Notes: a model not told the origin generated them from the sequence alone. DNA of 64,000 nt from Heterodontus francisci (GCF_036365525.1 NW_027141363.1:372001-436000), one strand, 5' to 3'. Positions 15,251-50,205 are shown, counted from the stretch's first letter. Made by a program: numbers and translations.

Positions 15251-15731
15251 CAAAAAGAGAAAATAACCTCAGCAGGGAATATAAACGCAAAAAAATACAA
15301 CAACAACCACAACATTAAAAAATGCAACAACAAGTTAAGCAGGGAAGGAAACAACAACCTCAACAAAAACCTCAGAAGGGAAAACACCAACCAACACAAC
15401 AATTACCTCAGCAGGAGAACAAAGCCAACAAATTCAACAACAGATCAGCAGGAGATTCAAACACCAACAAATTCAACAACCTCAGTCGGAGAAAAACACC
15501 AGCAAATACAGCAACAAATACACCAACAACCTCAGCAGCAGAATGATACCAACAAATTCAACAGCAACGAGTGGAAGCCAATGGTAGAGAAAGGGGCGTG
15601 TGTTTCCCATCAGGGAGGGAGGTGTTGTGCAAACTTGAATCACTTCCTTGAGTTTTCATGTGGCTGCACACAAGACTCAACTCTCTTCTTTCCACTGATT
15701 TCCCAATTGCAGGATCAGCTTCCAGTGGAAG

Positions 15732-26390: not shown

Positions 26391-26999
26391 GTTGCCAGGA
26401 TTTCTCATTTTCCTCTGTGAGTCCTCAAGTGAGCTGGAATATCCAGGGTGGAAGCACTGACCAGAATAGAATGGAGCAGCATGAGGTTTGGGGAATGCTG
26501 GGCAGATCCACTACGTACAGTCACATCCCTTCTGATCCCAGCCCTCAGCAATCATTTAACAGTGCGTGTTCCCTCCCAGAACAAGAAAACACTGGATTTC
26601 CATGATCAGATGGGAAAGCCATTCCAGCAACATCAATAATCTTCTTGAGACGGTCAGGTTCAATATTCATAGATATATTGAGCAGACAGAGAATGCAATA
26701 AAACTTTAAACACACGGTTTACAATCAGATTTGCAATCACACTGGGTGTTCAGGGAGTCAAACACGTTAAAAGCCCTTTCCAAGCTGCATCTCTCCTTGT
26801 CTGAATGTCCATCAATGGAAGATACGCAGCCATATTCACTTATTGCAGACGTTTTACATCGTTACACTCGAGAGTTGTGACCAATGAGTCATTTCACAAC
26901 AGTGCAACTGACTGATCAGGATGTTAATATTGGGAAATTGGAGAGTAGCAGGGAGTCACTGAATGACAATCATTTCAGGGGGATGGGTGAACAAGGTTC

Positions 27000-27470
27000 T
27001 GAGTGAGTTAAGACACAGCAAATGATTGCATGAGTATAAGATCAGGAAGTGTGAAAGATGTGAGCTTGGCCAGGAGAGCATTGGAATAGTCCAGGCTCGA
27101 GGTAACAGAGACACGGATTAGGGTTTCAGCAGCAGATGAGCTGAGGCAGTGTCGGAGTAGAGAGATGGTATGGAGGTGGAAATGGACAGTCTTGGTGATA
27201 GTGCGGATATGGAGTCGGAAACTCATCTCGGGGTCAAACACAACAACAAAGGCTGAAAACTGTCTTGATCAGTTTCAGACAGGTACCAGAGATGGTGTCG
27301 GTGGTCCAAGAATGACATTTGTGTCGGGGACCACAGACAATGGCTTCAGTCTTCCCAATATTTGGTCGGAGAAAATATCTGCTATCCAGTATGGGATGTT
27401 AGACAAGCAGTGTGACAGAGCAGAGACAATGGAGGGATTCACAGAGATGTTAGTGAGATAGAGTGTTGTC
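27000..27470 (-). mobile_element. L2 fragment
   Basis: FDPEMSF..HI..ITKT..FHL..I..LR..LS..AAETLI...VTS.LDYSNALL. Confidence 0.85.
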
Positions 27471-28099
27471 AGCATTCGTTTCCTGAGCTCACTATAACTC
27501 CGTCCTTTGTTATTAAACATTTGACACTTGTCACACATAAATGCTATTGTACCAAATGAAAGCTTTCCTTTTAAATATATTTTGATTCTCAAAAGTTCAG
27601 CATCAACCGATGCCCCATTCTTCATGAACTCTCAATTTAAAAGATGTTATCTACCCAGAGGTTCTCCTTGGACAAGGACTAACTGTTTTCCTTGCCCCTG
27701 CTCTCAGTGCTGACAGCTCCATGAAGCTTTGGGACCTCTACTCAATGGTAGATCTTTAAAGAAACTCCCTCATTAAACCTGAGACCACTTCATCCTGATA
27801 GTGGCCAGAGCTGTCAGGTTAGTCTGGGTTCAGCTGACCAGTGGTCACTGTATACAAATGGGATCGTACTTCTCTATTTAACAAAGCAATAGCTTAAAGC
27901 TCCCACACCCCTGCAGTATAAAGACACACCAATTACAGTATAACATTAGCATACTTCTAGTCGGAGATTAACCCTTTGCTGACAATTTCCTTGAGTTAAA
28001 CAAGGTGAAGATAAGATGGTACAGTGATTGAGTGAGGATGTCAAACACACAGAGACTGGATCACACGTGTCGGGTGCTTGTTGACATGTCCAAACACCT

Positions 28100-31000
28100 T
28101 CACACTTCCACAGGCTCACTAGCCGAGCACTGAACGTCTTCTGGATCCAATTCGAGCTTCGTGTGTGGACACTGATCCTGGAACATGTGCTTCACCTGCA
28201 TCGCAGAGAGGAGAAACGATGAATATTAATGCAAGGGGAGGAGTGAATAGAAAGAGACAGAGAGGATACAGACAGAGATCGGGAGAAAGGGTGGGGACAA
28301 GACAGTGAGAGACAGGGTGAGGCAAAGATACTCAGATAGAGGGAGAGATGGAGAGGGAGGTTAGGAGAGCTCCAGGGATTGAGACAGAGGTAGAGAAACA
28401 GAGGGTGTGAGAGCGAGAGGTCGTCAGAGATGCAGTGAGGGAGAGACAGGCACAGACAGCAAGAAAGACAAAGAAAGAGAAATACAGAGTGGGTGAGCGA
28501 GGCAGAGAAAGAGACAGAGATAGAAAGGACATAAAGCGAGAATGGGGAGAGTGAGAGGGAAGATCAGAGAGAGGTTACCATACAACGAGGAGGCCATTCA
28601 TCTCCTCGAGTCTGTTATACAGGAACAGGAGAGGCCATTCAACCCCTCGTTCGAGTTCTTACACGGGAACAGGAGAAGGCCATTCAGCCCCCTCACCCCC
28701 TCTCGAGCCTTTCACACAGGCTTAGGAGGAGGCCCATTCAGCCCCTCACAAGCCTGAACTGGGGACCAGAAGATAAGCAGAGGTGGAATTAGAGCTGTTT
28801 AAATATCTGAGCTGGAAATCCCATTCAGTGAATACAGACAGTGAGAGGGAGGATCTGTTGTCTCCCGTGTTTCTCCTCAGTACCGTGCAGTCTCTCACCC
28901 TCTCCACAACGATTCTCTTTGCAGTTTCATAATCCAGATCAGTCATTGAAGTGATCTTCACATTAATCCTCTTGTATTTGGTACCTAAACACAACAGTCA
29001 CAACATCAACAGGTTGAACACACCCAGAGTTTCGCACAGGGCACGGGACGTATTTCGAATGATCTCTCCTCTCTAATTTAAACTCTCTTTCCTCCAGTTT
29101 GTCATCCACTCGTTTGTTCATCTGTCTCTGTTATTCTCTCTATCTCAACTCGTCTTGTCTCTGATCTGCCCTCCCTGTGTTATCATCCTCTATCCTGCAC
29201 TCTCTTCTCTGTTGCCTCCTTGTTCCATCTCCCTAGATCATTTGCATTCCGTGTTTACTCCGGTCTCACTGCCCTTTACTCTGTCTCTGTCGATCACTCT
29301 CACTCTCTCTCTCTCTCTGATGCTCTCTGTCCCTCTGACAAAGACAAAGACAGAGAGACAAAGAGCATCTGTGAGAGAGAGAGAAAGTGAGAGTCAGAGA
29401 GACAGACAGGGAGACAGAACATCAGAGAGAGTGGGAGACAGAGTGAGGCGAAAGAGGGAGCTGGAGAAACTGAGAGCCACATAGAAGGAGAAAGGCGGCT
29501 ACAGAAATGAAATATATTTATATATGCGTGTGAAAGGCAGATAAAGGAGAAACAGAGCGACAGAGATAAAACTGAGAGTTACAGAGAGAGGGATGCGAGA
29601 TAGAAGCTCAAAGATATTTCTGAAGGAATTTCTGAAGGTTTACGTTTCAGTCTTTTCCCAATGATTCCACTCACACTGAATACAACGTGACTGCAACTCT
29701 TGTCCGACAGCACAGACAAGGCACAGAGAGAGAGAGAGAGAGAGAGAGAACGATGGGTTTTCCGACACAGAACGATCACACATCTGTTTGGAGACACTCT
29801 AACCTGATAGATTTGTGCCAGACTGAGACGGGAGGAGGGATTTCATATTCAGAAATGTGTAGAATCTGAAATGTTCCCACCGTCATCAGAAACAGGCTGG
29901 GAGTGGGAGGTTCCTCAGGAGTAGACGAGACCCCGAGTCTGAGAGGATCAAATAAAGACAAGAGGAATTTCACTGGGATTCGGAACGCTGGATGAGTGGA
30001 GGGAACTGTTTTCACACAGAACCTTTTCTCGTATGTAATCTCACTCCCTTTACACACTGAATCAATGTGTACCAGCCATTACCGAGGGGAGACACCAGAC
30101 ATCATTGTCTGCAGAATCAGTTACTACTCCGACAGGAAAAAAAACTAACAGAGAAAACTCGGCAGATTATCAAAGTGATCGGCAAAAGGAGAGGAAGAAT
30201 GCCGTGAGGGGGAAAGTGGAGTCAGAGAACAAGAGAGAGCAGGAGTGAGAGAGAAAAGCAGGGAGGGCGACAGGGGTGATAGGGAAAAGAGTGAGGGAGA
30301 TCTGTAGTGAGTGAGAGCAAGAGAGAGAAAAGAAAACAGCAGTGTAATGTTCCCCTTAATCAGTATTGATACCCCTCCTCCTTTCCTTCCTTCCCTCTCT
30401 TTCCTGAACACCTTGTAGTCAGGAATATTCACTGCCCAGTCCTGCCCCTCTTAGAGCCAGGACTCTGTTATTGCCACAACAACATATTTCCACATGGTTA
30501 TTTGCGCCTGCAGCTCACCAACCTTATTTAACACTCTCCGGGCATTCATATCCACACACATTAAACAGAAGTTAGAGGTTAATAACTTCCTTCTTACACT
30601 GACCCCATCTAATACGTTATTCTATTTTACTGCCTTGCAACCTGTCCCTCAGAATTCTCTATGCATCTGTGTCTTACTTTTTAATGTTGCTCGAATCCTG
30701 TTCTTCTTGATGGATATTAATGAGTTACACTTGTGTGTACAGGGCAGAATTTCATAATTTGTAGTGAGCACAAGACCTGGAAGTATTGTGAACAGTGAGG
30801 AGGAAAGTGATGGACTTCAAGTTGACATAGACAGACCTGTGGGATGGGCAAGCAAGTGGCAGATGAAATTTAATGCAGAGAATTGTGAAGTGATTCATTT
30901 TGGTAGGAAGAAGGAGGAGAGGCAATATAAAATAAAGGATACAATTGTAAAGGAGGTGCAGGGGCAGAGGTGGTAAGACATGTCGAGAGAGTAGTGAATA

Positions 31001-34000
31001 CATAGGAAGGATGTTAAGGTATTCGAGAGGGTGCGGAAAAGATTTACGAGAATGGTTCCCGGGATGAGGGACGTCAGTTCCATGAATAGATCAGAGAAGC
31101 TGTGGCTGTTCTTCCTGCAGAAGAGAAGATGAAGAGGAGATTTGATCAAGGTGTTCAAAATCACGAGGGATGTGGACAGAGCAGACAGGGAGAAACTGTT
31201 CCCATTGGTGGGAGGATCCAGAACCAGTGGACACCGGTTTTAGGTGAGTGGTAAAAGTAGCAAAAGAGACAGGAAAACCTTTTCACACAGCGAGTGGTTA
31301 GGATCTGAAATGCACTGCCCGAGAGTGTACTGGAGGCAGGTTCAATTGAGGCTTTCAAAAGGGAATTGGATAATTATCATAGGAGAAACAATCTGCAGTG
31401 CAATGGGGAAATGGCAGGAGTGGGAGTCGGTGAGTTGCTCAGGCTGAGAGCTGGCACGGTGAAGATGGGCTGAACGGCCTCTTTCTGGGCTGTAACCAGT
31501 CGATGAATCCATGATTCTGCGATGATAACCCCACAAGGCAGGTACCTGAGCTTCCAGAGCCCGCTGGGATAGAGGATGAAACCTCAGTAGATTCTCTAGT
31601 CGATTGTTCCTCGGATGCCTGAGTTTGGAAAATCACGGGTTCTGTAATAAAGGGAGGGAGACATTGCAGAGAGAGATATGGAGTAAAACACGACCGGTCA
31701 ACAGGATGGTACTAGTGTCAGGAGAATGTCAGATAGCAGTCTTTATAAAACCATACTCTTCCATCCTGTTCACTGCATTACTGTGTCAAACTCCCCGATG
31801 TCACGGCGTCACACTCCCCTCAGTCTCTGTCACACTCTGCTCAGTCACTCTATCAAGCTCTCCTCAGTCACTGTATCACACTCCCATTAGTCGTTGCATC
31901 CCATTCCCCTCAGTCGCGGTATCCCACTCCTCTCATTCACTGTATCCCACTTCCCTCAGTCACTGCATCACACTCACCTCAATCACTGCATCACACTTAT
32001 CTCAGCCGCTGTATCCCACTCCCCTCAGTCAATGTATCACACTCCCCTCAGTCACTGTATCCCATTCCCTCAGTCACTGTATCACACTCCCCTCAGTCAC
32101 TGTATCACACTCCCCTCAGTCATTGTATCATGCTCCCCTCAGTCACTATGTCACACTCCCTAAATCACTGTATCACAGTCCCCTTTCTCACTGTATCGCA
32201 CTTCCCTCAGTCACTGTATCACACTCCGCTCAGTCGCTGCATCACCCTCCCCTCAGTCGCTGCATCACACTTCCCTCAGTCACTGTATCACACTCCCCTC
32301 AGCAATTGTATCACTCTTCCCTCAGTAACTGTATCACACTTCCCTCAATCACTGTATCACACTTCCCTCAGTCACTGTATCCCACTCCCCTCAGCAACTG
32401 TATCACACTTCCCTCAGTCACTGTATCCCACTCCCCACAGTTGCTGCATCACACTCCCCTCAGTCACTGTATCACATTTCCCTCAGACACTGTATCCCAC
32501 GCTCCGCAGTCACTGGATCCCAATCTCCTCAGTCACTGCATCCCACTCCGTTCAGTCAATGCATCGCACTCCCTTCAGTCACTAAATCTCACTCCCCTCA
32601 GTCACTTTGTCCCATTGCCCTCAGTCACTGTGTCCCACTGCCCTCAGTCACTACATCCAACTCCCCTCGGTCACTGCATCCCATCCCCCTCAGTCACGAG
32701 ATCCCACTCCGCTCAGTCATTACATCCCACTCCCCTCAGTCACTATATCCCACTGCCCTCTATCATTGCCCCACACTCCATCATTAAGAGACTGGATGTG
32801 TCTCTGAGACTGAGCACTTCAGGCGTCACAGTGTGGGACTCTGTAATGTGATTCCAGATTATTTGGGTCAGATCTGTTCTCACTCTATTGAGATTGGTTC
32901 TCCCTCAATGAATTATCTTTCCTCCGTATTTCTCCTTGTCCTTTTCCAGCGCCAACTTCAACCGCATGGTCCAATGGTCACTGTCCCCAAATGTTCCACG
33001 GTGGACCCTAAATTCACTTGTCCCACTTCATTTCCCAGAATCAGATCCAGCAATGCCTCCTTCCTCGTTGGACTGGAAACAAACTGACGTCAGAAATTCT
33101 CCTGAACACACTCGAGAAACTCTTGTCCCACTCTGCCGTTTACACTATTACTATTCCAGTCTATATTCAGATAATTATAGCCCAACGATCGATCAACACT
33201 TTAACTCTTGCATCTCTTGGTTGCTCTATGCAAATATGTTCCTCTATATCTTTCCCACCAGTTGTTGGCCTATAAAATACACCCAGAAAGGTCATGGTAT
33301 TTCTTCCGTTGTTTCACTTTAATCTGATGGATTCTATCCTTGGTTCCTCTGCGACATCATCGCTTTCCAGCACTGTAATGCTCCCCTTAATCAATACTGA
33401 AACCCGCCTCCTTTCCTTGCTTCCCTCTCTTTCCTGAACAGCTAGTAGTCAGGAATATTCACTACCCAGTCCTGCCTCTCTTCGAACCAGGAATCGGTTA
33501 TTGCCACAACAGCATATTTCCACGTGGCTATCTGCGCCTGCAGCTCAACAACCTTATTTACCACTCTCCGTCCATCCATATACACACACATTAAACTGAA
33601 TTTTCAGCTCATCACCATCCCTCTTACACTGTCCCAGTCCAATACGTTACTCTTTTCTACTCCAATGTTATCTGTCCCTCCTAATTCTCTGTGCATCTGT
33701 GTTTTACTCTTTAATATTGATCGAACCCTGTTTTTCTTGATGTATATTAATGTGTTGCATTTGTGTGTACAGGGCAGAATTTCAAAAGTTGTGGAGGGCA
33801 CAAGACCTGGAAGTATTGTGAACAGTGAGAAGGATAGTGATGGACTTCAAGTGGACATAGACAGACCTGTGGAATGGGCAGGAAAGTGACAGATGAAATT
33901 TAATGCAGAGAATTGTGAAGTGATTCATTTTGGTCGGACGAACGAGGAGAGGCAATATAAAATAAAGGATACAATTGTAAAGGGGGTGCAGGGGCAGAGG

Positions 34001-37000
34001 GACCTGGGCGTACGTGTGCACAAATCATTGAAGGTGGCAAGACAGAGAGCGGTGAATACTTAGGAAGGACGTTAATGTATTCGAGAGGGTGCGGAGATGA
34101 TTTACGAGAATGGTTCCCAGGATGAGGGACGTCAGTTACTTGGATAGATTGGAGAAGATGGGGCTGTTCTCCCTGGAGAAGAGAAGATTAAGAGAAGATT
34201 TGATCGAGGTGTTCAAAATCACGAGGGATGTGGACAGAGCTGACAGGGAGAAACTGTTCCCATTGGTGGTAGAATCCAGAACCAGAGGACACCGGTTTTA
34301 GGTGAGTGGTAAAAGTAGCAACAGAGACAGGAAAACCTTTTCACACAGCGAGTGGTTAGGGTCTGGAATGCACTGCCTGAGAGTGCGCTGGAGGCAGGTT
34401 CAATTGAGGCTTTCAAAAGGGAATTGGAAAATTATCATAGGAGAAACAGTCTGCTGGGTGATGGGGAAATGGCAGGAGTGCGAGTAGGTGGATTGCTCTG
34501 GCAGAGAGCTGGCACGGTGACGATGGGCTGAATGGCCTCTTTCTGTGCTGTAACCAGTCTCTGATTCCATCATTCTGTAATTATAGTCCGGCACGGCAGA
34601 TACCTGGGGTTCCAGAGCCCACTAGGATAGAGGATGAAACCTCAGTGGATTCTCCAGTCGATTGTTCCTCGGATTCCTGAGTTTGGGAAGTCATGGGCTC
34701 TGTTAGAAAGGGAGGCAAACATTGCAGAGTGAGAGATGGAGAAAAACACAACATTTCGACAGGATGGTACGAGTGTCAGGAGAAAGTGAGATATCAATCT
34801 TTATAAATCCATCATCTTCCATCCTTATCACTACATTACTGTATCCCACTCCCCTCAGTCACTGTATCCCACTCCCCTCAGTCGCTGTGTCCCATGCCCC
34901 TCAGTCGCTGTATCCCACTCCCCTCAGTCGCTTTTGCCCACTCCCCTCAGTCGCTGTATCCCACTCCCCTCAGTCACTGTATCACACTCCCCTCAGTCAC
35001 TGTATTACACTCCCCTCAGCCTGTGTAACCCACAACCCTCGGTCTCTACATTCCACTCCCCTCAGTCACCGCATCCCACTCCCATAGGTCACTACATCCC
35101 ACTCAGCTCCGTCAGTCTATCCCACTCCCCTCAGTCACTGCATCCCACCTCCCTCTGTCACTACATCCCACTACTCTCAGGCTCTAACTCGCACTCCCAC
35201 TTCCCTCAGTCACAACATCCCACTCCCTCAGTCAGGCCATCGCACTGCCCTCAGTCACGGCATCCCAAGCCCCTCCGTCACTGCCTCCCACTCTCCCTCA
35301 CTCTCTGGATCTAATATCAGTCACAGTATTCCACTCCCCTCATTCACTACAACTCACTCCCCTCAAACCTTTCACACAACTCCGCTCAGCCTCTCCATCC
35401 CAGTCCCCTCAGTCATTGCATCCCAATCACCTCCATCAGTCTATCCCACTCTTCTCAGTCACTACACCCCACCATCCTCTGCCATTACATTGCACTCCCC
35501 TTAGTCACGACATCCCACTCCCCTTAGTCAATGCATCCCACTCCCCTCAGTCAATGCATCCCACTGCCCTCAGTCACTGTGAGTGAGAGATAACGTGTGA
35601 GAGTTAGAGACAGTGAGAATGGGAGACAGAGTGAAAGAGGGCAACAGAGGGAGAGAAAAATGAGAAGAAAGAGAGCGATAGAAAATGTGAGAGATCAAGA
35701 AAGAGTCCGAGAGTGAGAGCAACAGATACAGACAGCGAGAGAAGAAGCGAAATGGGGAGAGCAGTGAGTTACAGAGATAAAGAGAGAGACAGAGGGAAAA
35801 CGAAATTGTCAGATAGAGATAGACAGAGACTAAGTGAAAATGGCAGACAGAGAGAGAGAGCAAATATAGAGATATAAAGAGAAAGATACACAGAGAGCAA
35901 AAGAGATACTGACAGGAAGTGCAGAAAGAGGCAGTGGGAGAGGAGGGTGGAGAGAGAGGGATAGAAAATAAAACAGTCACAAGTAAATCCAGTGGTGATT
36001 TCAGAGGAAGCCTCTTTACTCAAAAGTGCGTCACAGCCCTAGACTCATACAATTATACAGCATGGAAACAGGCCCTTCGGCCCATCGTGTCCATGCCGAT
36101 CATCAAGCACGTCGCTATTCTAATCCCATTTTCCAGCACTTGGCCCGTAATCATGTATGCTGCGGCGTTTCAAGTGCTTATCTAAATACTTATTAAATGT
36201 TGTGAGGGTTCATGCCTCTACCACCTCTTCAGACAGTGTGTTCCAGATTCCAACCACCCTCAGGGTGAAAATCTGTTTCCTCAAATCGCCTATAAACCTC
36301 TTGCCTTTTATCTTAAGTCTATTCCCCCTGGTTACTGACCCCTCCGCTAAGGGAAATAGTTTCTTCCAATCTAACCGATCAATGCCCCTTATAATTTTGT
36401 ATACCTCAATCAGGTCCCCCCTCAGCCTTCTCTGCTCTAAGGAAAACAACCATAGCCTAGCCAGCCTCTCTTAACAGCTGAAATGCTCCAGCCCAGGCAA
36501 CCTCCTGGTGAATCTCCTCTGCACCCTCTCCAGTGCAATCACATCCTTCCTATATTGTGGTGCCCAGAACTGTTCTCAGTACTCCAGCTGTGGCCAAACT
36601 AGCGTTTTGTACAGCTCCATCATAACCGCCCTGCTCTTATATTCTGTGCCTCGGCTAAGACAGGCAAGTATCCCATATACCTTCCAAACCACATGATCTA
36701 CCTGTGCTGCTGCCTTCAGTGAACTATGGACAAGTACACCAAGGTGTAGTGAGAATGTAGAATTAATCCTGAATTGTCCAGGGCAATGAAATTTGAGGTA
36801 AATCTGGTTAAACACCTGAAGGAGAAAGGAAAAGAGGGATAAGGTTGGATAAAGAGGAGTAGCAAGAGGGGCCGAGGGGCCTCTTACTGTGCGGTAGATT
36901 CCATTCACCCAAATCAGGCAGTCAGTGTAAGAATCTACCCGTCCTGCTTGATCAACACAAAACTGACACCTGAGGTGAAAGTATCGATTGGGTTAGATGG

Positions 37001-40000
37001 TGATTTCTCAATGGAGTGTGGAGTTGTTTGCTCCTTGGTTCTTGAGGTTGTTGAAGTCTCTGGATGTGTAATAAAGGGAAAGAAACATGGGGGAGAGCAG
37101 GAGTGAGAGGAAGCTCGAACTGGATAGATTAGAGTACAGTAAATCACAGATGCTAGTCTATATGAAAACCATTGTGAGACAATCCACTGTCCACACTCAC
37201 CGCATCCCAGTTGGCACAGGAACTGCATTACATTTTCCCCAGTCATAAAATGTCACTGCCCTCAGTCATTGCATCCCACTCCCCGCAATCACATCTTCTC
37301 AATCCCCTTAGTCACTAAATCCCACTCCCCTCAATTACATCATCCCACTCCCCTCCGTCACTGCATCCCACTCCCCTCTGTCACTGCATCCCACTCCCCT
37401 CAATTACTTCATCCCACTCCCCTCCTTCACTACATCCCAATCCCCTCAATTACATCATCCCACTCCCCTTAATCACTGCATGCCACTCCCCGCAGTCTCT
37501 ACATCCCACTCCCCTCAGTCACTACATCCCACTCCCCTCAATCACTACATCCCACTCCCCCTCAGTCACCCCATCCCACTCCCCTCAGTCACCCCATTCC
37601 ACTCCCCTCAGTCGCCCCATCCACTCCCCTCAGTCACTACATTCCACTCCCCTCAGTCACTCCATCACACTTCCCTCAGTAAGAGACTGGATGATCTCCA
37701 GGACTGATCTTCTATGATGTAACACTGGGTGTGGAATCTGTTTCGAATGGGCCCACAAGGGGGGTACCTGATGTTCCAGACACCGCTGGGGTAGACGATG
37801 ATCCCCTCGTGGATTCTCGAGTTGATTGTTCCTCGGGTTCCTCAGTTGTGGCAGTCTCTGGATCTGTAATAAAGGAAGAGGGCGGAGAGGAGGAAACCCG
37901 AAGAGCTCATGTATTTAGTACTCGAGTCCAGACAGTGTCAGATTTTCATCTTTATCAAACCCTCGACTATCCAATCTGACTCCTCGTGAACATTGTTTCC
38001 TGGAGAGGGAGTGTGAGGTATCCAGCACTGCAGTGGGGACCTGACGTGAGCCATGAACACTGCAGGGATCAGAGTGCCTGATAGACAGGGACAGCAGAGT
38101 TCAGTTCCCTAGAGTTTCAGTGAAGTACACTTTGTGTTTCAGACACTTTATTCACTGTGTCCCTTTCAATAAGGAGGGGAGCGAGTAAACTGTCTCATTT
38201 CGGTGGGTGACAAAGGACATCCCAGAATCACCCTCTGGATGATATAGAAGCATCAATGTACCTGTACAATACGCAGCGAAATGAAACAACGACTTCAACT
38301 CATAAACGAAGTAACTGTTGCAGTTTTTGATCTTTATCTCATGGACCTTGTAGCAGTGATTTGTACCCCAGTGTAAACAAACTGTCCGTGTTACTTCCCC
38401 CTCTCCCACGCTGGGATGGGAACCTGGAATGAGAATTTAGAAATATTGAATAATGTAACCCATGTGAACAGTGCTGGACAGTGAATGTAAATCTGATATT
38501 ATAAAGGCTGACAGTACCCTGTAACCAGCTTGTAACATGTGTGGAGCAGTGATGATGTGGGACAGCAGTCTCCGGAATCTTCCATCCACCAGAACTGAAA
38601 TAACAATCACAGAGTCAGTCCCTGAACTGATGGTAAATATTAACTGTTAGAGAGACTGGTACCATCAGATAGTACCAGAAGGTAGGGGAAATCCCTTATT
38701 CTGCCCATATTGACGAGATTACCCTGAAATTGTTCCTTTACATTACCTTTTAAATCGGTACCATCCGAAATGAAGACCATCATCACACTTCACCTGGCTG
38801 GAGCACCGAGTGTCATCACAATCGCTGCTCCTCCAGGGCTGGTCCAGGACTGTGTGATTTACACACGGGTCAGTGAGTGCAGAGTCTGTGACTGAGTGAC
38901 AGAAAGATGTTTAATGTTAATATGTGACCTTACATCAGAACTGGGAAAAGTTCAAGTGACAAGTGAAAGCGAGGAGGATGTGAAGATAAATGGAAGGGAT
39001 CACACACCCCTCAGTCACTGTATCCCATTCCCCTCAGTCACTGTATCCCAGTCCCCTCTGTCACTGTATCCCACTCCCCTCTGTCACTGTATCACACTCC
39101 CCTCAGCCACAGTATCACACTCCCCTCAGCCACTGTATCACACACCCCTCAGTCACTGTATCCCATTCCCCACAGTCACTGTATCACACTCCCCTCAGTC
39201 ACTGTATCCCATTCCCCTCAGTCACTGCATCCCACTTCCCTCAGTCTCTGTATCCCACTCCCCTCAGTCACTGTATCACACTCCCCTCAGTCACTGTATC
39301 CTACTCCCCTCAGTCACTGCATCCCACTCCCCTCAGCCACAGTATCACACACCCCTCAGCCACTGTATCACACTCCCCTCAGTCACTGTATCCCATTCCC
39401 CACAGTCACTGTATCACACGCCCCTCAGTCACTGTATCCCACTCCCCTCAGTCACTGCATCCCCCTCCCCTCAGTCACTGCATCCCACTCCCCTCAGTCA
39501 CTGCATCACACTCCCCTCAGTCACTGGATCCCACTCCACTCAGTCACTGGATGCCACTCCCACTCAGTCACTGGATGCCACTCCCCTCAGTCACTGCTTC
39601 CCACTCCCCTCAGTCACTGTATCACACTCCCCTCAGTCACTGTATCCCACTCCCCCCAGTCACTGTATCCCATTCCCCATAGTCACTGTATCACACTCCC
39701 CTCAGTCACTGTATCCCACTCCCCTCAGTCACTGCATCCCACTACCCTCAGTCACTGTATCCCACTCCCCTCAGTCACTGCTCCTACTACCCTCAATCAC
39801 TGCATCCCACTTCTCTATGTCACCACACCCAGTCCACCGAATCACTCTATAACATGCCCTTCATTCACTGCACCTCACTCCCCGCATCTTTACATCCTAC
39901 ACCCCTCAGTTACCACATCCTACTCATCAGTCACTGCATCCCACTACCCTCAGTCACTGTATCCCACTCCCATCAGTCACTACATCCTACTCCCCTCAGT

Positions 40001-43000
40001 CTCGTCATCCCACTCCCCTCAGTCACTGTACCCCACTCCCCTCAGTTACCACATCCTACTCATCAGTTACTGCATCCCACTTCCCTCAATTACAGCATCC
40101 CACTCCCTTCAGTCACTACATCCCACTCCCCTCAGTCACTGTATCCCACTCCCTTCAGTCACTACATCCCACTCCCCTCAGTCACTATACCCCACTCCCC
40201 TCAGTCACTACATCCCACTACCCTCAGTCACTGTATCCCACTCCCCTCAGTCACTGTATCCCCCTCCCCTCAGTCGCTACATCCCACTCCCCACATTCAC
40301 TGCATCCCACTCTCCTCAGTCACTACATCTCATTCCCCTCAGTCACTACATCCCACTGCCCTCAGTCGCTGCAGCCCACTCCTGACCGAGCTGCTAGTCT
40401 GGGACTGTGGCAGGTGATGACAGAACCAACAAGGGGAGAAAATATACTTGACGTCATCCTCACCAATCTGCCTGCCACATATCCATCTGCTGATGACAGT
40501 ATTGGTGGGAGTGACCACCGCACAGTCCTTGTGGAGACGAAGTCCCGCCTTCACATTGAGGATACCGTCCATCGTGTTGTGTGGCACTATCACCGTGCTG
40601 AATGGGATAGATTCAAACAAGTCTAGCAATGCAACAATGGGCATCCATGAGGTGCTGTGGGAACAACAGCAGCAGCAGAAATGTACTCAACCACAATCTG
40701 TAACCTCATGGTCCGGTATATCCCCCCACTCTATCATGACCATCAAGCCAGGAGACCAAACGTGGTTCAATGAAGAGTGCAGGAGGGCATGCAAAGTGCA
40801 GCACATGACAGACCTCAAAATGAGGTGTCAGCCTGGTGAAGCTACAACCCAGGACTATCTGCATGCCAAACAGCAGAAGCAGCATGTGATCGACAGAACT
40901 AAGCGATCCGATAACCAACGGATCAGATCTAAGCTCTGCAGTCCTGCGACATCCAGTCGTGAATGGCAGTAGACAATTAAACAACTAACTGGAGGAGGTG
41001 GCCCCACAAACATCCCCATCCTCAATGATCAGGGAGCCCAGCACATCAGTGCGAAAGATAAGGCTGAAGCATTTGCAAAATTCTTCAGCCAGAAGTGCCG
41101 AGTTGATGATACATCTCGGCCTTCTCCTGCAGTCCCAAGCATCACAGATGCCAGTCTTCAGCCAATTCGATTCACTCCGCTTGATATCAAGAAATGACTG
41201 AAGGCACTGGATACTGCAAAGGCTATGGGCCCTGACAATATCGCGGATGTACCTGTGCTCCAGAACTTGTTGCATCCTTAGCCAAGCTGTTCCAGTGCAG
41301 CTACAACACTGGCATCTACCCTGCAATGTGGAAAACTGCCCAGGCATGTCCTGTACATAAAAAGCAGGACAAGTCAAAGCAGGGCAAGTTCAACCCACCC
41401 AATTACCGTCCCATCAGTCTACTCTCTATCATCAGTAAAATGATGGAAGGTGTCGTTGACAGTGCTATCAAGTGGTACTTGCTCAGCAATTACCTGTTCA
41501 GTGATGGTCAGTTTGGGTTCCGCCGGGGTCACTCAGCACCTGACCTCATTACAGTGTGGTTCAAACATGGACAAAAGAGTGGAACTCAAGAGGTGAGGTG
41601 AGAGTGACTGCCCTTCACATAGAGTCTGTCAGGATCCTGCTGCTGTGTCTGACACTCACCAGAAAACCTGAATCTCCTCAATTGTAGACCTGACAGAATA
41701 CTACCCAGACATGCCAGCCCTCTCTCCAGACAGCGAGCGTCTGTTTCAGTTCCCTAGAGTTTTAGTGAAGAGTTCACTCTGTTTTACAGATCCTTTATTC
41801 ACTGTGTCCCTTACAAAAAGGAGGGCAGTGAGTAAACTGTCTCATTCCCATGGGTGACACGGGACATCCCAGAATCACCCATCTGCACCATATACAAACA
41901 GCAATCTACCTGTACAATAAGCAGCGTTACAGTCGGGTGGAGGCTTCAACTCATAAACAAAATAACTGCTGCAGTTTATGATCTTTATTTCCTGGGTCCA
42001 GTGACAGCGATTTCCAGCCTTGTTAAAACAAACTGTCCTCGTTACTTCCCCCTGTCCCACACTAGGATGGGAACCTGAAATGAGAGTTTATAAATATTGA
42101 AGAAAGTAACCCACGTGAACAGTGCTGGACAGTGAATGTAAATCTGATATTTTTAAGACGGAAATTACCCTGTAACCAGCCTGAGGCACGTGTGGAGCAG
42201 TGATACTGTGGGACAACAGTGTCCGGAATCTTCCATCCACCAGAACTGAAACAATAATCACAGAGTCAGTCCCTGAACTGATGGTAAATATTAACTGTTA
42301 GAGAGACTGGTAACAGCAGAGAGTACCAGAAACTGGGGGAAATCCATTACTCCTCCCTCATTAACTGATTTACCCAGAATTTGTTCCTTTACATTACCTT
42401 TTAAATCTGTACCATCCTTGAGCAAGATTATCATCACACTTCTCCTGACCGGAGCCCACAGTGACATCACAATCGATGCTCCTCCAAGGCTGGTCCAGGA
42501 CTGTGTGATTTACACACGGGTCAGTGAGTGTGGAGTCTGTGACTGAGTGACAGAAAGATGTTTAATGTTAATATAAAGTACAGTTAATGTTACACAGCGC
42601 CTTGTACCCTCCCGAAATACCAATAATCTCAGTTTCACCCTCCGCCCTGGGCAAAGCCCCGCAGATTAAAGCTGGAAAATGTCCTCCTTCTCTAAACTGG
42701 GTTTCCATCTGTCTCCCAGCTCAGCCTCCCCCTCTAACTCACTGCTCACAGACAGTCCTCCCGATTCTAGATTGACCACCAGCTCTCAGGTAACAGAAAG
42801 CAGTAAATATCTCAGCTTCACTTCATCCCAGTAGGAAAGATGTAAAGTGGAGGAGGAGCGAGAACTGCCAGGTGGAGCACAAGCCACCCAGTGTGACTGG
42901 TGGGTCCTGGAGAGGGAACGTGTAGTCTCAAAACCAACAACAACCTGCGTTTATGTAGAGCCTTTGATGTAATAAAATGTCCCAAAGCACTTCATCGGTG

Positions 43001-44504
43001 TGTTACCATCCCGAACTGACACCGATCCACAGAAGCAGCTGGTCGGGCAGGTGGCCAAATGCTCTGTCAAAGAGGTAGATTTTAAGGAGTGTCTGAAAGG
43101 ATGAAAGAGAGGTGGAGAGACGGAGAAGTTGAGGGAGAGAATTCCATAGCGTTAAGCCTCGGCAGGTGAAGGCACAGCTGCCAATGGTGGAAGGGATTCG
43201 AATCGGGAATACTCAAGAGGCCTGAATTAGAGGAGCGCAGAGATCTCCGAGGGTTGTGGGGCTGGAGATGATTTCAGCGGTAGGGAACGGCGAGGTGATA
43301 GAAGGATCTGGAAACAATTGTGAGAATATTGAAATCCAGGCCTTGCTGAACCGGGAGCCAGTGTAGGTCAGTGAGCACGGAGATGAAAGGTGAACTGGAC
43401 TTGGGCAGTATCATACTGGATGACCAAAATGTACAGAAGGTGGAATGTGAGAGATCAGCCAGGAGATCTTTGGAATAGTCAAGTCTAGAGGTACCAAAGT
43501 ACTGCTAAAGGGTTTGAGCAGCAGAGAAGCTGCAAGAGCCAAGTCAGGAATACTGTTTCTGATCATCCTTCTCGAATTGTCGGCAGTCTTTGACACAATT
43601 CACCACATTACCCTCTGCCAACACCTCTCCTTCCATGTCCAGCTGGGTGGAACTGCTCTGGCCTATTTCCACTCAACCCAGTCTAGTCTCAGCCAGAGAA
43701 TCTCCTGCAGTGTCTTCCCTACCCACTCCAGCACTGTTACCTCTAGGGTATCCCGAGAATCTATCTTGTCCCTCTCCAATTTCTCATCAGCTTCCGACTG
43801 TGCCCAGCTTCCTTCCCTGTAGCCTCCTCATCACAAGGACATCCAATTACAACCTCCGTAATATCCACCATCACTGATTTTGCCTCAGCCAATCCTCTAC
43901 CAAAAACCCTCAACCTTCTAGAGAATCAAATCTTCTAATCCACTCCTGGCCAGCCTCCCAGCTTCCACTTTCCAGAAGTCAGGTCTCCTCCAACACACTG
44001 CTGTTGTATGTTATCTTGCAGAAAGTTTAAGTCACACATCACCCCTGTGCTCTCTGACCCACATTGGTTCACAGCTGCAAACGCCTTTGATGTACAACTT
44101 CCATCTTCCTGTTCAAATTCTTTCATGACCTCTCCTCCCTCTCCCACCTCATTTCTGTAATCTTCACCAACTCTCTGTTTCTCTGACCCAAGCCTCCTGT
44201 AGAACTTCCCTCCACTCCCTTTCCTCCAGCAGTGTCTGATGTGGCTTCAAGATGTCTAGCCTCCTAAACCTTTCTGCCTCTCCACCTCCGTCTGCTTTTT
44301 TAAACTAACAGTCAGCCCTCCAATCATCTTCTTCCCCGCCGTGTCAGACATTTCTTCAATCAGATTTCTGTGGAACATCTTGGGAGATTATTCTATGTAA
44401 CGGTTTGAATAAACACAGCTTGTTCTAGTTGTACTGGGGGTGAACTTTGTCGAGAATGAAACTTACTCACTCAGGTAACCCAGAATGATCAGCAGATTCC
44501 ACAT
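28100..44504 (-). CDS. Complete multi-exon gene (copy B): secreted uromodulin/GP2-like tandem D10C (D8C) domain protein without ZP module, about 424 aa
   Basis: GT-AG exons, all in frame: 44504-44471 (MWNLLIILGYL); 42542-42398 (ITDSTLTDPCVNHTVLDQPWRSIDCDVTVGSGQEKCDDNLAQGWYRFK); 42245-42169 (SSGGWKIPDTVVPQYHCSTRASGWLQ); 42074-41910 (GSHPSVGQGEVTRTVCFNKAGNRCHWTQEIKIINCSSYFVYELKPPPDCNAAYCT); second D10C 38891-38747, 38594-38518, 38423-38262; 96-nt stalk exons 37863-37768, 34699-34604, 31641-31546; 28984-28899 (GTKYKRINVKITSMTDLDYETAKRIVVER); 28195-28100 (VKHMFQDQCPHTKLELDPEDVQCSASEPVEV*). The D10C motifs match UMOD/GP2 (DPC..LD..WRS, GWYRF, HP...G.V.R..C, YFVY.L..P..C..YCT). Confidence 0.85.
30330..32820 (+). 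repeat. Intragenic duplication unit (CR1 debris + stalk exon + minisatellite), repeated at about 33370-35580
   Basis: Same CR1 pieces and junctions precede the stalk exons at 31546-31641 and 34604-34699. Confidence 0.88.
31770..32785. repeat. 23-bp minisatellite array
   Basis: Same unit (GTATCACAC variant); follows a stalk exon. Confidence 0.95.
34835..35580. repeat. 23-bp minisatellite array
   Basis: Same unit. Confidence 0.93.
36040..36745 (-). mobile_element. CR1 3' fragment in a stalk intron
   Basis: FSLEQRRLRGDLIEVYKI, LYKTLV.PQLEY. Confidence 0.85.
36970..37065 (-). pseudogene. Degenerate fourth 96-nt stalk exon with its acceptor mutated (ttattacAC instead of ttattacAG)
   Basis: Open frame PETSTTSRTKEQTTPHSIEKSPSNPIDTFTS, homologous to the other stalk exons and exactly 96 nt; GT donor present, AG absent. 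Confidence 0.7.
37252..37680. repeat. 23-bp minisatellite array
   Basis: Same unit; positional equivalent of the much longer array at 1-2876. Confidence 0.93.
39000..40382. repeat. 23-bp minisatellite array (copy B, between D10C blocks)
   Basis: Same unit. Confidence 0.95.
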
Positions 44505-44967
44505 CTTACTGGCTGAGATTCTGGAAAGGGAAACACAAGACAAACATTTGAGAGAGATTACCGAGTAGGGAATTGGAGGGAATATTAAATATGGAGTTGC
44601 CGAGGAGTTCGTCAGTATATCTGTTCAGAGTGGTGAGCTCCATCTAATTATCTCTCTCTCACTGGGACTCTTACAGACAGAGGTGAGCTCAGCTACATGT
44701 TCTTGTTAAACATCAGGAACTTGACTCCAATCTTTCACCCTTTCCACTCTCCAAAGCTTTTATGAATAATTGCATGTGTTCCTGACTCTCTCCTCCAGGT
44801 CTGTCTCCTGCATCCCTGTAACGAACCTCTTTGAATTTCTGGCAAAGGTTATGACTGAAGATGGTGTTGTTTCAGGAGAAGCAGGACACACACCCCCTGG
44901 GTCAACACCTAGCAAGTGACAAACTCCTTTGCTTTTTCTAACAGGCCTCCCATACCCAACTGCTTAC

Positions 44968-45160
44968 CAGAGTCTCCAATGGAGGTGTCACTGGGTGGGA
45001 GATGTTGTCGGTTCAATTCCAGCTGCTTGCTCCTCAGTCTTGGGTCCACTCTGCTGTGAACAGTGTCAATCTCAGTGACAGCTCCAACCCCTATATACAC
45101 CACGGCGGATTGACTGCATTGCTGGTTGGCTGAAATATTTACATTTAGTCATGATGAATG
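44968..45160 (-). promoter_or_regulatory. Putative promoter and non-coding exon 1 of copy B
   Basis: TATATA at 45097-45092 and donor CTG|gtaagc at 44968/44967, both conserved with copy A. Confidence 0.55.
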
Positions 45161-47534
45161 ATATGACATAATCTATGCAAACGAAGGCCTTTTGGTGAAA
45201 CTATCTGCCTTAATAAACAACATTAATATTTCTCCTGGGCCCATGCTAACCCACGGAGCTTTGTTGTTGTAACATAACTTGTCTTCAGTTACCCAACAGG
45301 GAGGGTGGAGGGAGATTGGAGCCTGGGACAGGGACTCTGAATATTAAAGTTAGTATTTGCCAGTTGGCTGTGTATATTTGATCTTTCATAGGCACTAAGT
45401 ATTAGGGAGAGAATATTCACAGGAGACATGCCTCTCTTATCAGTAGTGGGTCAGTATTGGGGGGATGATGAGAGGGGGCAGAGAAACAAGATGTTCCGGA
45501 GAGACAAATGATCGGACTTCCATTTTCCTCCTTGAGGTCGATGGGGTTAAAATAAATGATTGTGTTTTTCAGAATATAGTCACAGAATGAGAACAATGAA
45601 ATCCTCACATCAGCGACAGTGATACCATCTCCGAAATAGCACAGATACAGCGTTAGTAACACATACAAACCAGAATGAGGAGGACATAAATTTCTCAGTG
45701 AGAGAGTGTTTGAGTATTCAGGACATGGGATATTGTGAGGGGTCCCTGACCAGATGTTAATGTCTCAGTCACTGACTGCTGCTCACCTGCTAACATTGGG
45801 ATAGCAGTGGGCTTCAGGTACAAACTTCAATACAAGAACCACCCAGGATGTTGTTTTATGGAAGGAAAAGTGTTGTATGTAAACTTTATAGAGTTACTGG
45901 CAGACCATTGTCCATGACTGACCGAATAATAATAAGCAGGTAATTTGTCCCAGATATGGGTGGGATTAGTCTTTGATATGTTTGATTTTGACTGCAAGAA
46001 TGAGGAGAGATGAAACAATACAATTTGTGAAGTGGTGCAAGAACAGAGAGACCTGGGGGATGCTTGTGCAGGAATATTTAAAGGTGGCAGGGTAGGTTGA
46101 GAAAGCGATTAATAAATCATATTACAGTCTGGGCTTTGTAAATAGAGAGGTCGAGTACAAAACTCCGGGAGTCATGCCAAACCTGTACAAAACACCAGTT
46201 CGGTCCCTGTTGGAACATTGTGCCCAATTCAGGGCACCACACTTTCGGAAAGACCTGCAGGCTTTGGAGAGGGTGCAGAAGAGATTTGCTCGGATGGTGA
46301 AGTTGGTGAGGAATTTCAGTCAAGTAAAAAGACTGGGCTAGAAAGGGACGTTCTCCTTAGAGCAGAGAAGGTTAAGGGGAGATTCGATAGATCACCAGAG
46401 GGCACAGCTTTAATGTGATGGGCAAAGGTACCAGAGGTGACATGAGGATAAATGTTTTTTAATATCATGAGTGGTTTGGATTTGGAGGGCAATGTCTGAT
46501 AGGGTGGTGGAAATTCAATGGTATTATTCAAAAAGGGAATTGGCTCAATACTTGAAGGGGAATTAATTGAGGGAAATGGTGAAAGAGAGGGGAGTTGGAT
46601 TAACTGGGTTGATTTTCGAAAGAGATGACAAACCCTCGATGGCCCGAATGGCCTCCCTCTGTTGTACTATTCTAGGATTTGTTTCTGATGGGGTGGGATT
46701 CGTCTGTCCCCACATTTCTCTGTTAGATCATTAGCACATTGGGCAGTGCAGTCAGTCCAGGGTTCTAGATAATATTCCTGTGACAGAATCACAATGTCAC
46801 TGTCCCCTCAGTAATCACAATCACCTTGCAGCACATTGTTATTCAATGTTACACTGCCTGTGAAAATGGGCGTCTGAATGTGCATCTCAGTTCCAACCAG
46901 CCCATGTCCAACTCCTCGTCCCTGATAGTTTCCACAGTTTCCATTCTCTCTGGATTGCTGATTCTGTCAGTGCCCCTGTGTCCATGCCAGGTTGTCAGAT
47001 ATTCATTCAGTCCCACAATGGACCCATTAACACTTCTGAGCCGGCTTTGATATTTGCATTCCCTGGGACTAACAGATTTGAATGTTGTGCCGTGTGTCAA
47101 CTAGGAAAATGTCAACTTTTGCAAAGCAGGAAGCTGTTGTGTTTGTCAAGGACTGAGAACAATAGACTCTTCATATCAGAGGCACAGATAAGCTCAGCTG
47201 AAGGACAAAGATGCACAACTAACAACATAGTCAAACAAACTGAGGAGAGAGAGGGGGTGGGAGAGAGAGAGAGTTGGGAGTGTGTGTGTGGTGTATGCGT
47301 GCATCCAGTCATGCATTATGGAACGTGTGATTAATGGAAGAAGCTACAATACAAAGGGTTTGGAGGTAATGCCACAGTTGTAGGAGGCTCTGGTTAGACT
47401 ACATTTGGAATATTGCACACAGTCTGGGCACCTTCCTCAACAAGCAGCTGTTTGCCTTGGACCAGATACAGCTGAGATTCACCAGAATGATACTGGGGTT
47501 AACACTGAGTACACTCGATGAACAGTGACAATTA

Positions 47535-48182
47535 TCCCTGTCTCTGTAACCTCCTCCAGCCCCTACAACCCTCCCTATCTCTGTAACCTCCTCCAGCTCC
47601 TCCAATCCTCCCTATGTCTGTATCCTGCTTAAGGTACTGCAACCCTCCCTATCTCCGTAACCCCCTCCAGCCCCCTACAAGCTTCCCTGTTTCAGTAACC
47701 TCCTCCTGACCCGACAACGCTCCCTATCGATGTAACCCCCTCCAGCCCCCAACAAACTTCCTTATTTCTGTAACTTCGTCCAGCCCCGACAACCCTCCCT
47801 ATCTCTGTTCCCTCCTCCAGCCCCCACAATCTTCCCTATCTCTGTAACCTTCTCCAGCCCAACAACCCTCCCTGTCTCTGTAACCTCCTCCAGCCCCGAC
47901 AATCCTCTCTATCTCTGAAACCTCCTCTAGCCCTACTACCCTCCCTATCTCTGTAACATCCTCCATCCCTACAACCCTCCCTATCTCTGTAACTTCCTCC
48001 AGCCCCTACAATACTCCCTATCTCTGTCACCTCCTCCAGCCCTACAACCCTCCCTATCGCTGTAACCTCCTCCAGACCTACAACCCTTCCTATCTCTGTA
48101 ACTTCCTCCAGCACCTACAATACTCCCTTTCACTGTAACCTCCTCCAGCCCTACAACCCTCCCTATCTCTGTAACCTCCTCC
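47535..48182. repeat. About 37-bp minisatellite, paralog of 12600-13868
   Basis: Same unit, shorter array. Confidence 0.9.
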
Positions 48183-49931
48183 GGGCAATACAACAAATAC
48201 AACAAAAACCTCAGCACGAAAAGCATCAACACATTCAACAACAGCCTCAGCGGGGGAAAACACCAACAAATTCAGAAGCAACGTTGGCAAACAAAAGCTC
48301 ACCAACCAATGTCAGGAGGAGAAAAAAACACCAACAGAATTCAAGAAGTGCGTCAGGAGGAGAAAAGCAACAAAGACAACTTCAGCAGGTGAAAAACAGC
48401 AGCAGATGCAACAACATGTTGAATCTGCACGGTCCTCCTTACCAACATTTCGGGCCTTGTGCCAAGGTTGGGAGAGCTGTCAAGCAACAACCTGACATAG
48501 TCATACTCAGGGAATCATGCCTTGCAGACAATGTCACAGAGCTCGCTATCGCCATCCCCGGGTACGTCCTGTTCCACCATCTCCAACTGCTTCATAAATG
48601 AAATTCCCTTCAATCATAAGAGCTCAGAGTGGGGATGTTCACTGATGATTTCACAATGTTCAGCATCATTCGCGACAGCTCAGATTCTGAAGCAGCCCGT
48701 GTTCAGATGTAGCAAGACCTGGACAACATCCAGGCTTGGGCTGATAAGTGGCAAGTAACATTCGCACCACACAAGTGCCACGCATTGACCATCTACAACA
48801 GGAGAGAATATAACCATCTCCCTTTGACATTCAATGGCATTACCATCGCTGAATCCCCCACTATCAACATCCTGGGGATTGCCATTGAACAGAATCTGAA
48901 CTGGAGTAGCCATATAAATACTGTGGCTACAAGAGCAGGTCAGAGGCTAGGAATCCTGCAGCCAGTTACTCACCTCCTGCCTACCCAAAGCCTGTCCACC
49001 ATCCACAAGGCACAAGTCAGGAGTGTGATGGAATACTGTCCATTTGCCTGGATGGGTGCAGCTCCAACAACACTCAAGAAGCTCGACACCATCCAGGGCA
49101 AAGCAGCCCGCTTGATTGGCACCCCATCTACAAACATTCACTCCCTCAACCACTGATGCATAGTGTCAGCAGTGTGTACCATCTACAAGATCGACTGCAG
49201 CAATGCACCAAGGCTCCCTCCGTCAACACCTTCCAAACCCGCAACCTCTACCACCTAGAAGGGCAAGGGCAGCAGATGCATGGGAACACCACCACTTGCA
49301 GGTTCTCCTCCAAGTCACACACCATCGTGACTTGGAACTATATCGGCTGTTCCTTCACTAACTGTGGGTCAAAATCCTGAAACTCCCTTCCTAACAGCAC
49401 TGTGGGTGTACCTACACTACATGGACTGCAGTGGTTCAAGAAGGCAGCTCACCACCACCTTCTGAAGGGGCAATTAGGGATGGACAATAAATGCTGACCT
49501 CAACCAGCATCGCCCAAAATCCCATGAATGAATTAAAAAAGAGAAAATAACCTCAGCAGGGAAAGAAAAACACCAAAAATACAACAACAACCTCAGCATG
49601 CAAAAACCGAATTGAACAACAATTTAAGCAGGGAAGAAAACAACAAGTACAACAAAAACTTCAGCAGGGAAAACATCAACCAACACAACAACTACCTCAG
49701 CAGGAGAACAAGGCCAACAAGTTCAACAACAGATCAGCAGGAGATTCAAACACCAACAAATTCAACAACCTCAGCCGGAGGAAAACACCAGCAAATACAA
49801 CAACAACCTCAGCAGCAGAATGATACCAACATTTGCAACAGCAACTACTGGCAGCCAATGGCAGAGAGAGGGGCGTGGGTTCCCCATCAGGGAGGGAGGC
49901 GTTGTGCAAACCTAAATCACTTGCTTGAGTC

Positions 49932-50205
49932 GACAAGTCAGTGCCGACCACCAACCACCCATTTATACTAATCCTACACTCATTCCATATTCCTACCACA
50001 TCCCCACCTGTCCCTGTATTTCCCTCCCACCTACCTATACCACGGGCAATTTATAATGGCATGTGGGAGGAAACCGGTGCACCCAGAGGAAAGTACGCAG
50101 ACACAGGAAGAACTTGCAAACTCCACACAGGCAGTACCCAGAATTGAACCTGGGTCGCTGGAGCTATGAGGCTGCGGTGCTAACAACTGGGCCACTGTAC
50201 CGCCC
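49932..50205 (-). mobile_element. HE1-like SINE
   Basis: Same head and body as 25206-25449. Confidence 0.85.

Follow-up and report, generated by a model that had tools for sequence, protein, structure and literature searches.

To our knowledge, all functional knowledge of the D10C domain derives from ZP-filament proteins, namely UMOD, GP2 and the omcins. The decoy module of human GP2 and UMOD is bipartite and consists of a disulfide-stabilised β-hairpin and the D10C domain, with the glycan in the groove between them (PDB 7P6R, 7PFP; PMC8930769). The β-hairpin of UMOD helps to keep the glycan high-mannose, in GP2 the oligomannose bound by FimH is borne by N65, and the canonical disulfides of D10C are C1-C8, C2-C9, C3-C6, C4-C10 and C5-C7 (PMC8930769). 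The zebrafish omcins (omc1-15), which were reported to be teleost-specific, have five D10C domains, EGF, ZP and a predicted glycosylphosphatidylinositol (GPI) anchor; bacteria induce one of them, omc5, which has a protective effect in infection (PMC11415648). Here we deal with a gene in a stretch of 64,000 nucleotides (nt) from the shark Heterodontus francisci (GCF_036365525.1 NW_027141363.1:372001-436000), in the following called the window, with positions counted from its first letter. It is very probably a real minus-strand gene of a tandemly amplified elasmobranch family, the product being a secreted protein with two D10C domains and a mucin-like stalk, but with no ZP module.

The gene extends from about 45.1 to 27.3 kb of the window. 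From stop-to-stop open segments and by direct reading, 12 coding exons with AG/GT borders and compatible phases were re-derived on the minus strand, and arithmetic on their lengths and phases gives a total of 1275 nt, equal to 424 amino acids (aa) plus the stop codon. Exons and total are those of the initial annotation, which had been made from the sequence of the window. Its three stalk exons of 96 nt were all found again, but a fourth stalk exon (S2, 37059-36970) was absent from its model; adding S2 to the 12 exons yields a protein of 454 aa, and in the resulting 13 coding exons all frames are open and all splice sites canonical. The closest homolog is XP_067884563.1 (H. francisci, 472 aa; in the following P0010), whose parts follow one another as in the window gene and whose tail is about 90% identical. 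The features are:

45092-45097, minus strand: TATATA box, read directly and identical in the paralog within the window.
44968-45065, minus strand: putative non-coding exon 1 (5' untranslated region), start approximate, donor CTG/GTAAGC, kept in the paralog.
44471-44520, minus strand: exon 2 with the predicted signal peptide, acceptor CCAG/, ATG at 44504, MWNLLIILGYL, donor A/GTGAGT, phase 1.
42542-42398, 42245-42169 and 42074-41910, minus strand: three exons of D10C domain 1, from Pfam D8C_UMOD, GP2/UMOD alignments and splice sites.
38891-38747, 38594-38518 and 38423-38262, minus strand: three exons of D10C domain 2, from Pfam D8C_UMOD, the GP2 match and splice sites.
37768-37863, minus strand: stalk exon S1, 96 nt, phase 1-1, 83% identical to the stalk of P0010, Ser plus Thr 45%.
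36970-37059, minus strand: stalk exon S2, 90 nt, phase 1-1, internal acceptor CCAG/AG.
34604-34699, minus strand: stalk exon S3, 96 nt, phase 1-1.
31546-31641, minus strand: stalk exon S4, 96 nt, phase 1-1; RNA-type contigs confined to 31546-31628.
29881-29938, minus strand: disabled "hinge" exon of 58 nt with both splice borders (AG/GT) preserved; in phase 1 it runs into TGA.
28899-28984, minus strand: tail exon T1, 86 nt, phase 1 to 0, 87% identical to the tail of P0010.
28100-28195, minus strand: tail exon T2 with the TGA stop at 28102-28100; 29 of 31 residues match P0010.
27337-28099, minus strand: 3' untranslated region (3'UTR); a 99% identical contig reaches 27953, and paralog contigs of 95-96% identity reach 27337.
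1-10367, minus strand: paralogous gene copy comprising the 5' end, the exon of the signal peptide, the two D10C units and S1, continuing beyond the start of the window.

The two D10C units are each encoded by three exons with phases 1-2, 2-1 and 1-1, polypyrimidine-AG acceptors and GTA/GTG donors. Already the third exon alone matches Pfam D8C_UMOD (PF23283), with 33.5 bits in domain 1 and 31.7 bits in domain 2 (gathering cut-off 27), whole family homologs scoring 85-257 bits. GP2 and UMOD are the only significant matches of the first and third D10C exons among solved structures (E=4.8e-6 for domain 2 versus GP2). It should be noted that sequence searches with the window gene were done exon by exon and that the fold, Pfam and PDB analyses of whole proteins were done on database homologs. 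An AlphaFold2 model of P0010, computed with a family alignment of 40 sequences, has predicted local distance difference test scores of 83-96 in both D10C domains, below 50 in the stalk (271-414) and of 58-86 in the tail, which has one long helix. The model, which is that of the homolog and not of the window's own product, superimposes on the GP2 decoy module (7P6R) with Z 18.3 and a root mean square deviation of 1.7 Å over 123 residues, and Foldseek gives template modelling scores of 0.83-0.88 to GP2 and UMOD. In fold and sequence (40-45% identity) the shark domains are D10C domains of the GP2/UMOD type; the sequon DPC-x-N-x-T falls on GP2 N65, and the disulfides C1-C8, C4-C10 and C5-C7 are kept.

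Unlike GP2 and UMOD the shark protein has no β-hairpin, no EGF, no ZP module and no GPI anchor and cannot form ZP filaments; it has two tandem copies of D10C and, behind them, a mucin-like stalk and a tail of a new type. The cysteines differ, too: C3 and C6, which bond with each other in GP2, are missing throughout the shark family, an extra cysteine pair is often found in the C1-C2 loop, and the C2-C9 bond is dispensable in half of the family. In 152 near-full-length family domains C1, C4, C5, C7, C8 and C10 are conserved to about 100%, whereas C2 and C9 co-vary: 71 domains have both and 72 have neither, 9 have only C9, and none has only C2. Each of the two domains of the gene has 9 cysteines instead of the ten of a D10C.

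The absence of a ZP module is borne out at the 3' end. Three small runs (116-160 million letters) from one sample were compared with positions 27000-31760 (4761 letters) at a likeness of at least 90%. We infer that these runs are RNA because an intron is removed, because coverage is limited to exons and because the runs are far too small for the assembly of a shark genome. In contigs of two of the runs, X1 and X2, there is a joint that skips exactly 703 nt, the length of the intron between T1 and T2; the reported offset of this joint is explained by four shared letters, GTGA. From T2 onward the X1 joint contig (324 nt, depth 85, with 85 nt on the T1 side) passes the stop codon and reaches 27953 without splicing and with one mismatch. 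Other contigs, of 95-96% identity and evidently derived from paralogs, span the region between the T2 acceptor, where they end, and 27337 in the 3'UTR, the terminal exon being covered without further splicing for 150 to 760 nt. In family transcripts T2 is the last exon and holds the stop codon, which speaks strongly against ZP exons downstream. Neither AATAAA nor ATTAAA is present within 1.6 kb downstream of the stop codon (26500-28099, minus strand), and since the paralog-type contigs reach at least 760 nt past the stop, the 3'UTR is long. When the open segment of 94 aa in domain 2 was used as homolog query there was no match within the length band, and so no transcript fragment specific for this copy. 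The introns at 30100-31450, 33100-34500 and 40400-41600 contain retroelement fragments with reverse-transcriptase-like open reading frames (ORFs), which draw very high contig depth and should not be taken for gene expression.

Further evidence for the ZP-less end comes from the protein itself. The tail is about 59 aa long and the C-terminus, ...DVQCSASEPVEV, is hydrophilic, which leaves no GPI or transmembrane signal. In Pfam scans of ten homologs only D8C_UMOD was found, no ZP and no EGF. Together with the tail spliced through the stop, this upholds the architecture proposed at the outset: signal peptide, two D10C domains, a stalk rich in Ser, Thr and Glu, tail and stop, without ZP, EGF and GPI. 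Lacking ZP, EGF, a membrane span and a GPI signal, the product would be soluble or associated with mucus and would not polymerise as UMOD and GP2 do.

At the 5' end, the coding part of the putative signal peptide (44504-44471) fits the N-termini of RefSeq homologs, which begin alike (MWTLLIILSYL, MRTLLLILG..). An ORF beginning METQFREGG... at 42706, with a phase-1 donor, had also been considered as signal-peptide exon and was dropped in favour of MWNLLIILGYL at 44504. The TATA promoter of the initial annotation was found at 45097-45092, with box, donor and signal-peptide exon conserved in the paralog; there is no ATG between the box and the donor of exon 1, and the first exon is putatively non-coding.

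The gene belongs to a family that is widespread in elasmobranchs. In a HMMER search with one exon of 54 aa against 1.84 billion representatives 137 matches were obtained at E <= 1e-10, the nearest of which have a signal peptide (M[WRK]TLLLILG.L), 1-4 D10C domains, a repetitive stalk rich in Ser, Thr, Glu and Pro and one of two conserved tails of about 50 aa. RefSeq predicts the ZP-less architecture in at least 14 elasmobranch species. Name look-ups gave the sharks Heterodontus francisci, Mustelus asterias, Carcharodon carcharias, Chiloscyllium, Hemiscyllium ocellatum, Scyliorhinus torazame, S. canicula and Pristiophorus japonicus, and further Leucoraja erinacea, Rhinoraja longicauda, Mobula hypostoma, Hypanus sabinus and Hemitrygon akajei. 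Names were looked up for 28 clusters; these comprised only elasmobranchs and no chimaera, so that a "chondrichthyan" range is unproven. Signal peptide, D10C subtype, stalk and tail are the same in XP_067884563.1 and XP_067883189.1 (both H. francisci), XP_078062394.1 (M. asterias), XP_072423510.1 (Chiloscyllium), XP_041038352.1 (Carcharodon) and XP_055514227.1 (Leucoraja), the window copy differing from them by its unpaired cysteines and its disabled hinge exon. In tblastn, every part of P0010 and of the homolog P0121 falls on predicted exons, and XP_067883189.1 has stalk exons that are 97-100% identical to those of the window and shares with it even a reading derived from an intron. A profile of the tail type of the window gene matches 18 proteins from both sharks and batoids, and the tail must therefore be old and conserved; the conserved C-terminal domain comprises about 55 aa. 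A second, unrelated tail (..EECE..I...V.V.Y.G.N.L.....E.YL..V...L...LPCK..) is found in many members, e.g., P0021, P0052, P0004 and P0151; in Mustelus it occurs as an alternative isoform of the same locus (X1 versus X2).

The initial annotation had called the family hidden, which does not hold, since full-length RefSeq models of the same architecture are available from many sharks, skates and rays. It was right in forecasting that automatic pipelines would label such proteins as GP2-, uromodulin- or OIT3-like. The database names are "uncharacterized," "uromodulin-like," "GP2-like," "OIT3-like," "mucin-5AC-like," "integumentary mucin A.1-like," "bile salt-activated lipase-like" and "melanoma-associated antigen E1-like" (MAGE-E1-like). 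It should be considered that the RefSeq models are computational and inconsistent in names and ends, one of them reading through a stalk donor. As judged from the database entries, the family is annotated but not recognised as a family, and in the literature searched no ZP-less D10C protein of a cartilaginous fish was found described. The closest analogues in print are the omcins, which likewise are a clustered, lineage-specific and rapidly duplicating fish family with several D10C domains in tandem; the shark family differs from them in having a stalk and a tail instead of EGF IV, ZP module and GPI anchor.

Each stalk exon encodes 39-48% Ser plus Thr and sits as a cassette (90-96 nt, phase 1) inside a genomic repeat of about 3 kb. 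As all stalk exons are phase-symmetric, the frame is kept by any subset of them; for ray homologs up to five isoforms are listed in RefSeq. In S2 the upstream acceptor is mutated to AC, for which reason the exon was at first regarded as dead. This was dropped because an internal acceptor, CCAG/AG, yields an exon of 90 nt and because its peptide is identical in 30 of 30 positions to part of XP_067883189.1. The hinge piece (29938-29881) corresponds to an exon of 60 nt in P0010 encoding DSGIPSTPEEPPDSQPVSDD and has suffered two losses of 1 nt each; in the incoming phase it reads SGSRLLLRNLPLPACF and then a stop. Being frameshifted it would, if included, truncate the protein before the tail. No contig in the three runs covers it, which is evidence neither way. 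The H. francisci automatic models P0010 and P0121 differ at the last stalk exon, which one of them extends by 12 codons beyond the usual donor before it splices to the hinge exon, whereas the other reads on from there into the intron, where it stops, and so is without the tail.

With its disordered Ser/Thr-rich stalk followed by a small α/β domain the protein is reminiscent of mucins with a SEA domain, such as MUC1 and MUC16. The shark tail, however, is only about half as long as SEA (~110 aa) and has no GSVVV autoproteolysis motif and no transmembrane segment. Pfam SEA was matched neither by the tail exons nor by the ten homologs, and the tail exons and alternative upstream ORFs gave no Pfam match at all. 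Structural matches of the tail in the P0010 model are weak (Z <=3.5), those with the SEA domains of MUC1, MUC16 and GPR110 (Z 2.4-2.7) being far below significance and no more than a lead. The best score in the ESM Atlas, 0.79, is uninformative, and the prediction of a tail homodimer (P0010 residues 405-472, two copies) gave a score of 0.02, which is evidence neither way.

A second paralog 35 kb away, as claimed in the initial annotation, is indeed present: a copy shifted by about 34.9 kb begins at 10367, leaves the window at position 1 and is 98% identical over D10C unit 1 and 93% over unit 2. Domain 1 of the window gene differs from that of the paralog by 5 non-synonymous and 4 synonymous changes, the ratio of non-synonymous to synonymous rates (dN/dS) being 0.33. 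For domain 2 there are 25.5 non-synonymous and 3.5 synonymous differences (dN/dS ~1.9) at an intron divergence of 5.9%, the excess over neutrality not being significant; relaxed constraint and diversifying selection both fit. The first domain-2 exon of the paralog (3951-4097) reads CDVTGCSGQEKCDDNLAQGWYRFK, which is the domain-1 version (cf. 42400-42542), where domain 2 of the window gene has CDDTRCSSQVKCDDGLHFGWYRFK. This suggests gene conversion between the two domains in the paralog, and conversion by domain-1-like sequence would account for part of the dN/dS excess. As to the cysteines, domain 1 has retained Ca but not Cb of the loop pair, a state common to the paralog and found in 8 of the 152 family domains, and domain 2 has kept C2 but lost C9 (SLFHF versus SLFYC in the paralog and in P0010).

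Given that every characterised D10C protein (UMOD, GP2, omcins) has EGF, ZP and a GPI anchor (PMC8930769, PMC11415648), one could think that the exons are only the 5' part of a larger gene of the UMOD/GP2/omcin type with EGF and ZP exons elsewhere. This is highly improbable: the stop sits in a terminal exon that contigs cover without further splicing, RefSeq models of many species finish at the same tail and a ZP match was found in 0 of 10 homologs. More serious is the possibility, which has some weight although we do not favor it, that the window copy is a decaying or non-functional paralog, i.e., a young pseudogene, or a gene with a misfolding product or a transcript subject to nonsense-mediated decay, in a family that is still functional. 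Its domain 2 is in the state C2 without C9 that is seen in 0 of 152 family domains, its domain 1 has Ca without Cb, inclusion of the hinge exon, with its intact splice sites and 2 lost nt, leads to a premature stop, and the dN/dS of domain 2 is consistent with relaxed constraint. Yet all 13 coding exons retain open frames and canonical splice sites, the dN/dS of domain 1 is low, though calculated from just 9 differences, the "Ca only" state is shared by 8 other family domains, expressed copies may skip the hinge, which no contig contains, a dN/dS above 1 fits diversifying selection equally well and stems in part from the paralog's gene conversion, and the tail has a spliced contig that is 99% identical. 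Some further points weigh against our interpretation of this copy as a gene for a secreted two-headed protein and should be thought of when using it. Each D10C of the window copy carries an unpaired cysteine, and it is uncertain that the copy still gives rise to a properly folded product. Relative to the window, the best contig has differences at 28042 and 28931, the latter difference being non-synonymous (Y to D in T1), so that the contig may be from an allele or a near-identical paralog and expression of the exact copy is unproven. Direct RNA support is confined to the 3' end and does not extend to the promoter, the signal-peptide exon, the D10C exons or the junction from stalk to tail, and the runs are RNA by inference only. 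For the whole protein, fold and database matches are those of P0010 and other homologs. Signal peptide and O-glycosylation, though probable, rest on sequence and family conservation.

That the product is a secreted ZP-less protein with two D10C heads leaves two ways in which these could work. If so built, the protein would be directed to secretion by a short cleavable signal peptide; the disordered, acidic stalk, rich in Ser and Thr, would probably be heavily O-glycosylated, CVNHT would be N-glycosylated, and a soluble or mucus-embedded molecule would present the two D10C heads, its cassette stalk setting the reach and allowing isoforms. The heads may, tentatively, serve defence or recognition outside the cell, on mucosal surfaces or in body fluids, either via an N-glycan at the GP2-N65 position or by direct binding of ligands; omc5 is a functional precedent for proteins with several D10C domains in defence. 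The first alternative is the decoy for adhesins of the initial annotation, which is possible and about level with the second. CVNHT aligns with GP2 C63-Q-N65-Y-T in both domains of the gene and in both domains of the paralog, and the sole functional precedents, UMOD and GP2, work through their glycan, whereas for a stand-alone D10C no ligand is known. On the other hand, there are only 8-9 cysteine-free residues (TDSTLTDP, VTDSALTDP) before C1 of each domain, and therefore the β-hairpin half of the decoy module, which shelters the glycan in GP2 and UMOD (PMC8930769), is absent. Family-wide, just some 40 of the 152 domains (~26%) carry the N65 sequon, VTHT, VKHR and VNHK being common at this position instead, and the position of UMOD N275 is occupied by YELK, which is no sequon. 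Missing hairpin and rare sequon both weaken the decoy idea. They fit the alternative that the heads are diversified binding domains of a humoral recognition family rather than carriers of decoy glycans for mannose-specific adhesins, a reading that we regard as equally tentative and with which the expansion in copy number, the 1-4 domains per protein and the fast divergence of domain 2 at the protein level also agree; the NHT retained at the N65 position in all four D10C domains of the window speaks against it.

The surroundings of the gene are of interest in their own right. Minisatellite arrays with a 23-bp unit (18 to 60 copies) lie at 31780-32760, 34838-35579, 37254-37680 and 38999-40382; they adjoin each stalk exon in the intron and separate the two D10C units. 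They yield long spurious ORFs on the plus strand, e.g., one of 415 aa at 31604-32851, which are not genes. Between the two D10C genes there are V segments of the T-cell receptor (TCR) type at 53200-53580 and 51680-51990, both on the plus strand. The segment at 53200-53580 ends with ...ALYFCAWSQ, behind which come a heptamer at 53544, a spacer of 23 bp and the nonamer ACAAAAACA; the conserved Trp is replaced by TGA (YMF*YKQ). The segment at 51680-51990 (..STYYCGAH) contains stops. Both look like V pseudogenes. The tandem duplication of about 35 kb (40941-53404 versus 5994-16083), with 94.6% identity over 7.3 kb and then 85-88%, takes in the region of the V segments. As it spans both the D10C gene and the V region, D10C genes and V segments amplify together, an interleaving that matters for the assembly and annotation of shark antigen-receptor loci.

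For annotation it would already be useful to give the family a name, its members being spread under at least 10 unrelated automatic names. A more far-reaching idea, which we consider unlikely but worth stating, is that "D10C heads on mucin stalks" are a large, fast-evolving family of soluble proteins that co-amplifies with TCR V segments in 35-kb blocks and serves as a humoral or mucosal system for recognition, agglutination or decoy. If this were true, the uromodulin/GP2 domain would have a use that does not depend on ZP filaments, and the innate immunity of sharks would have an arm not described before. A widespread and expanded secreted form without ZP in sharks and rays would show D10C to be a free-standing module, and the family would offer a natural system for asking what D10C itself does, display a glycan or bind a ligand.

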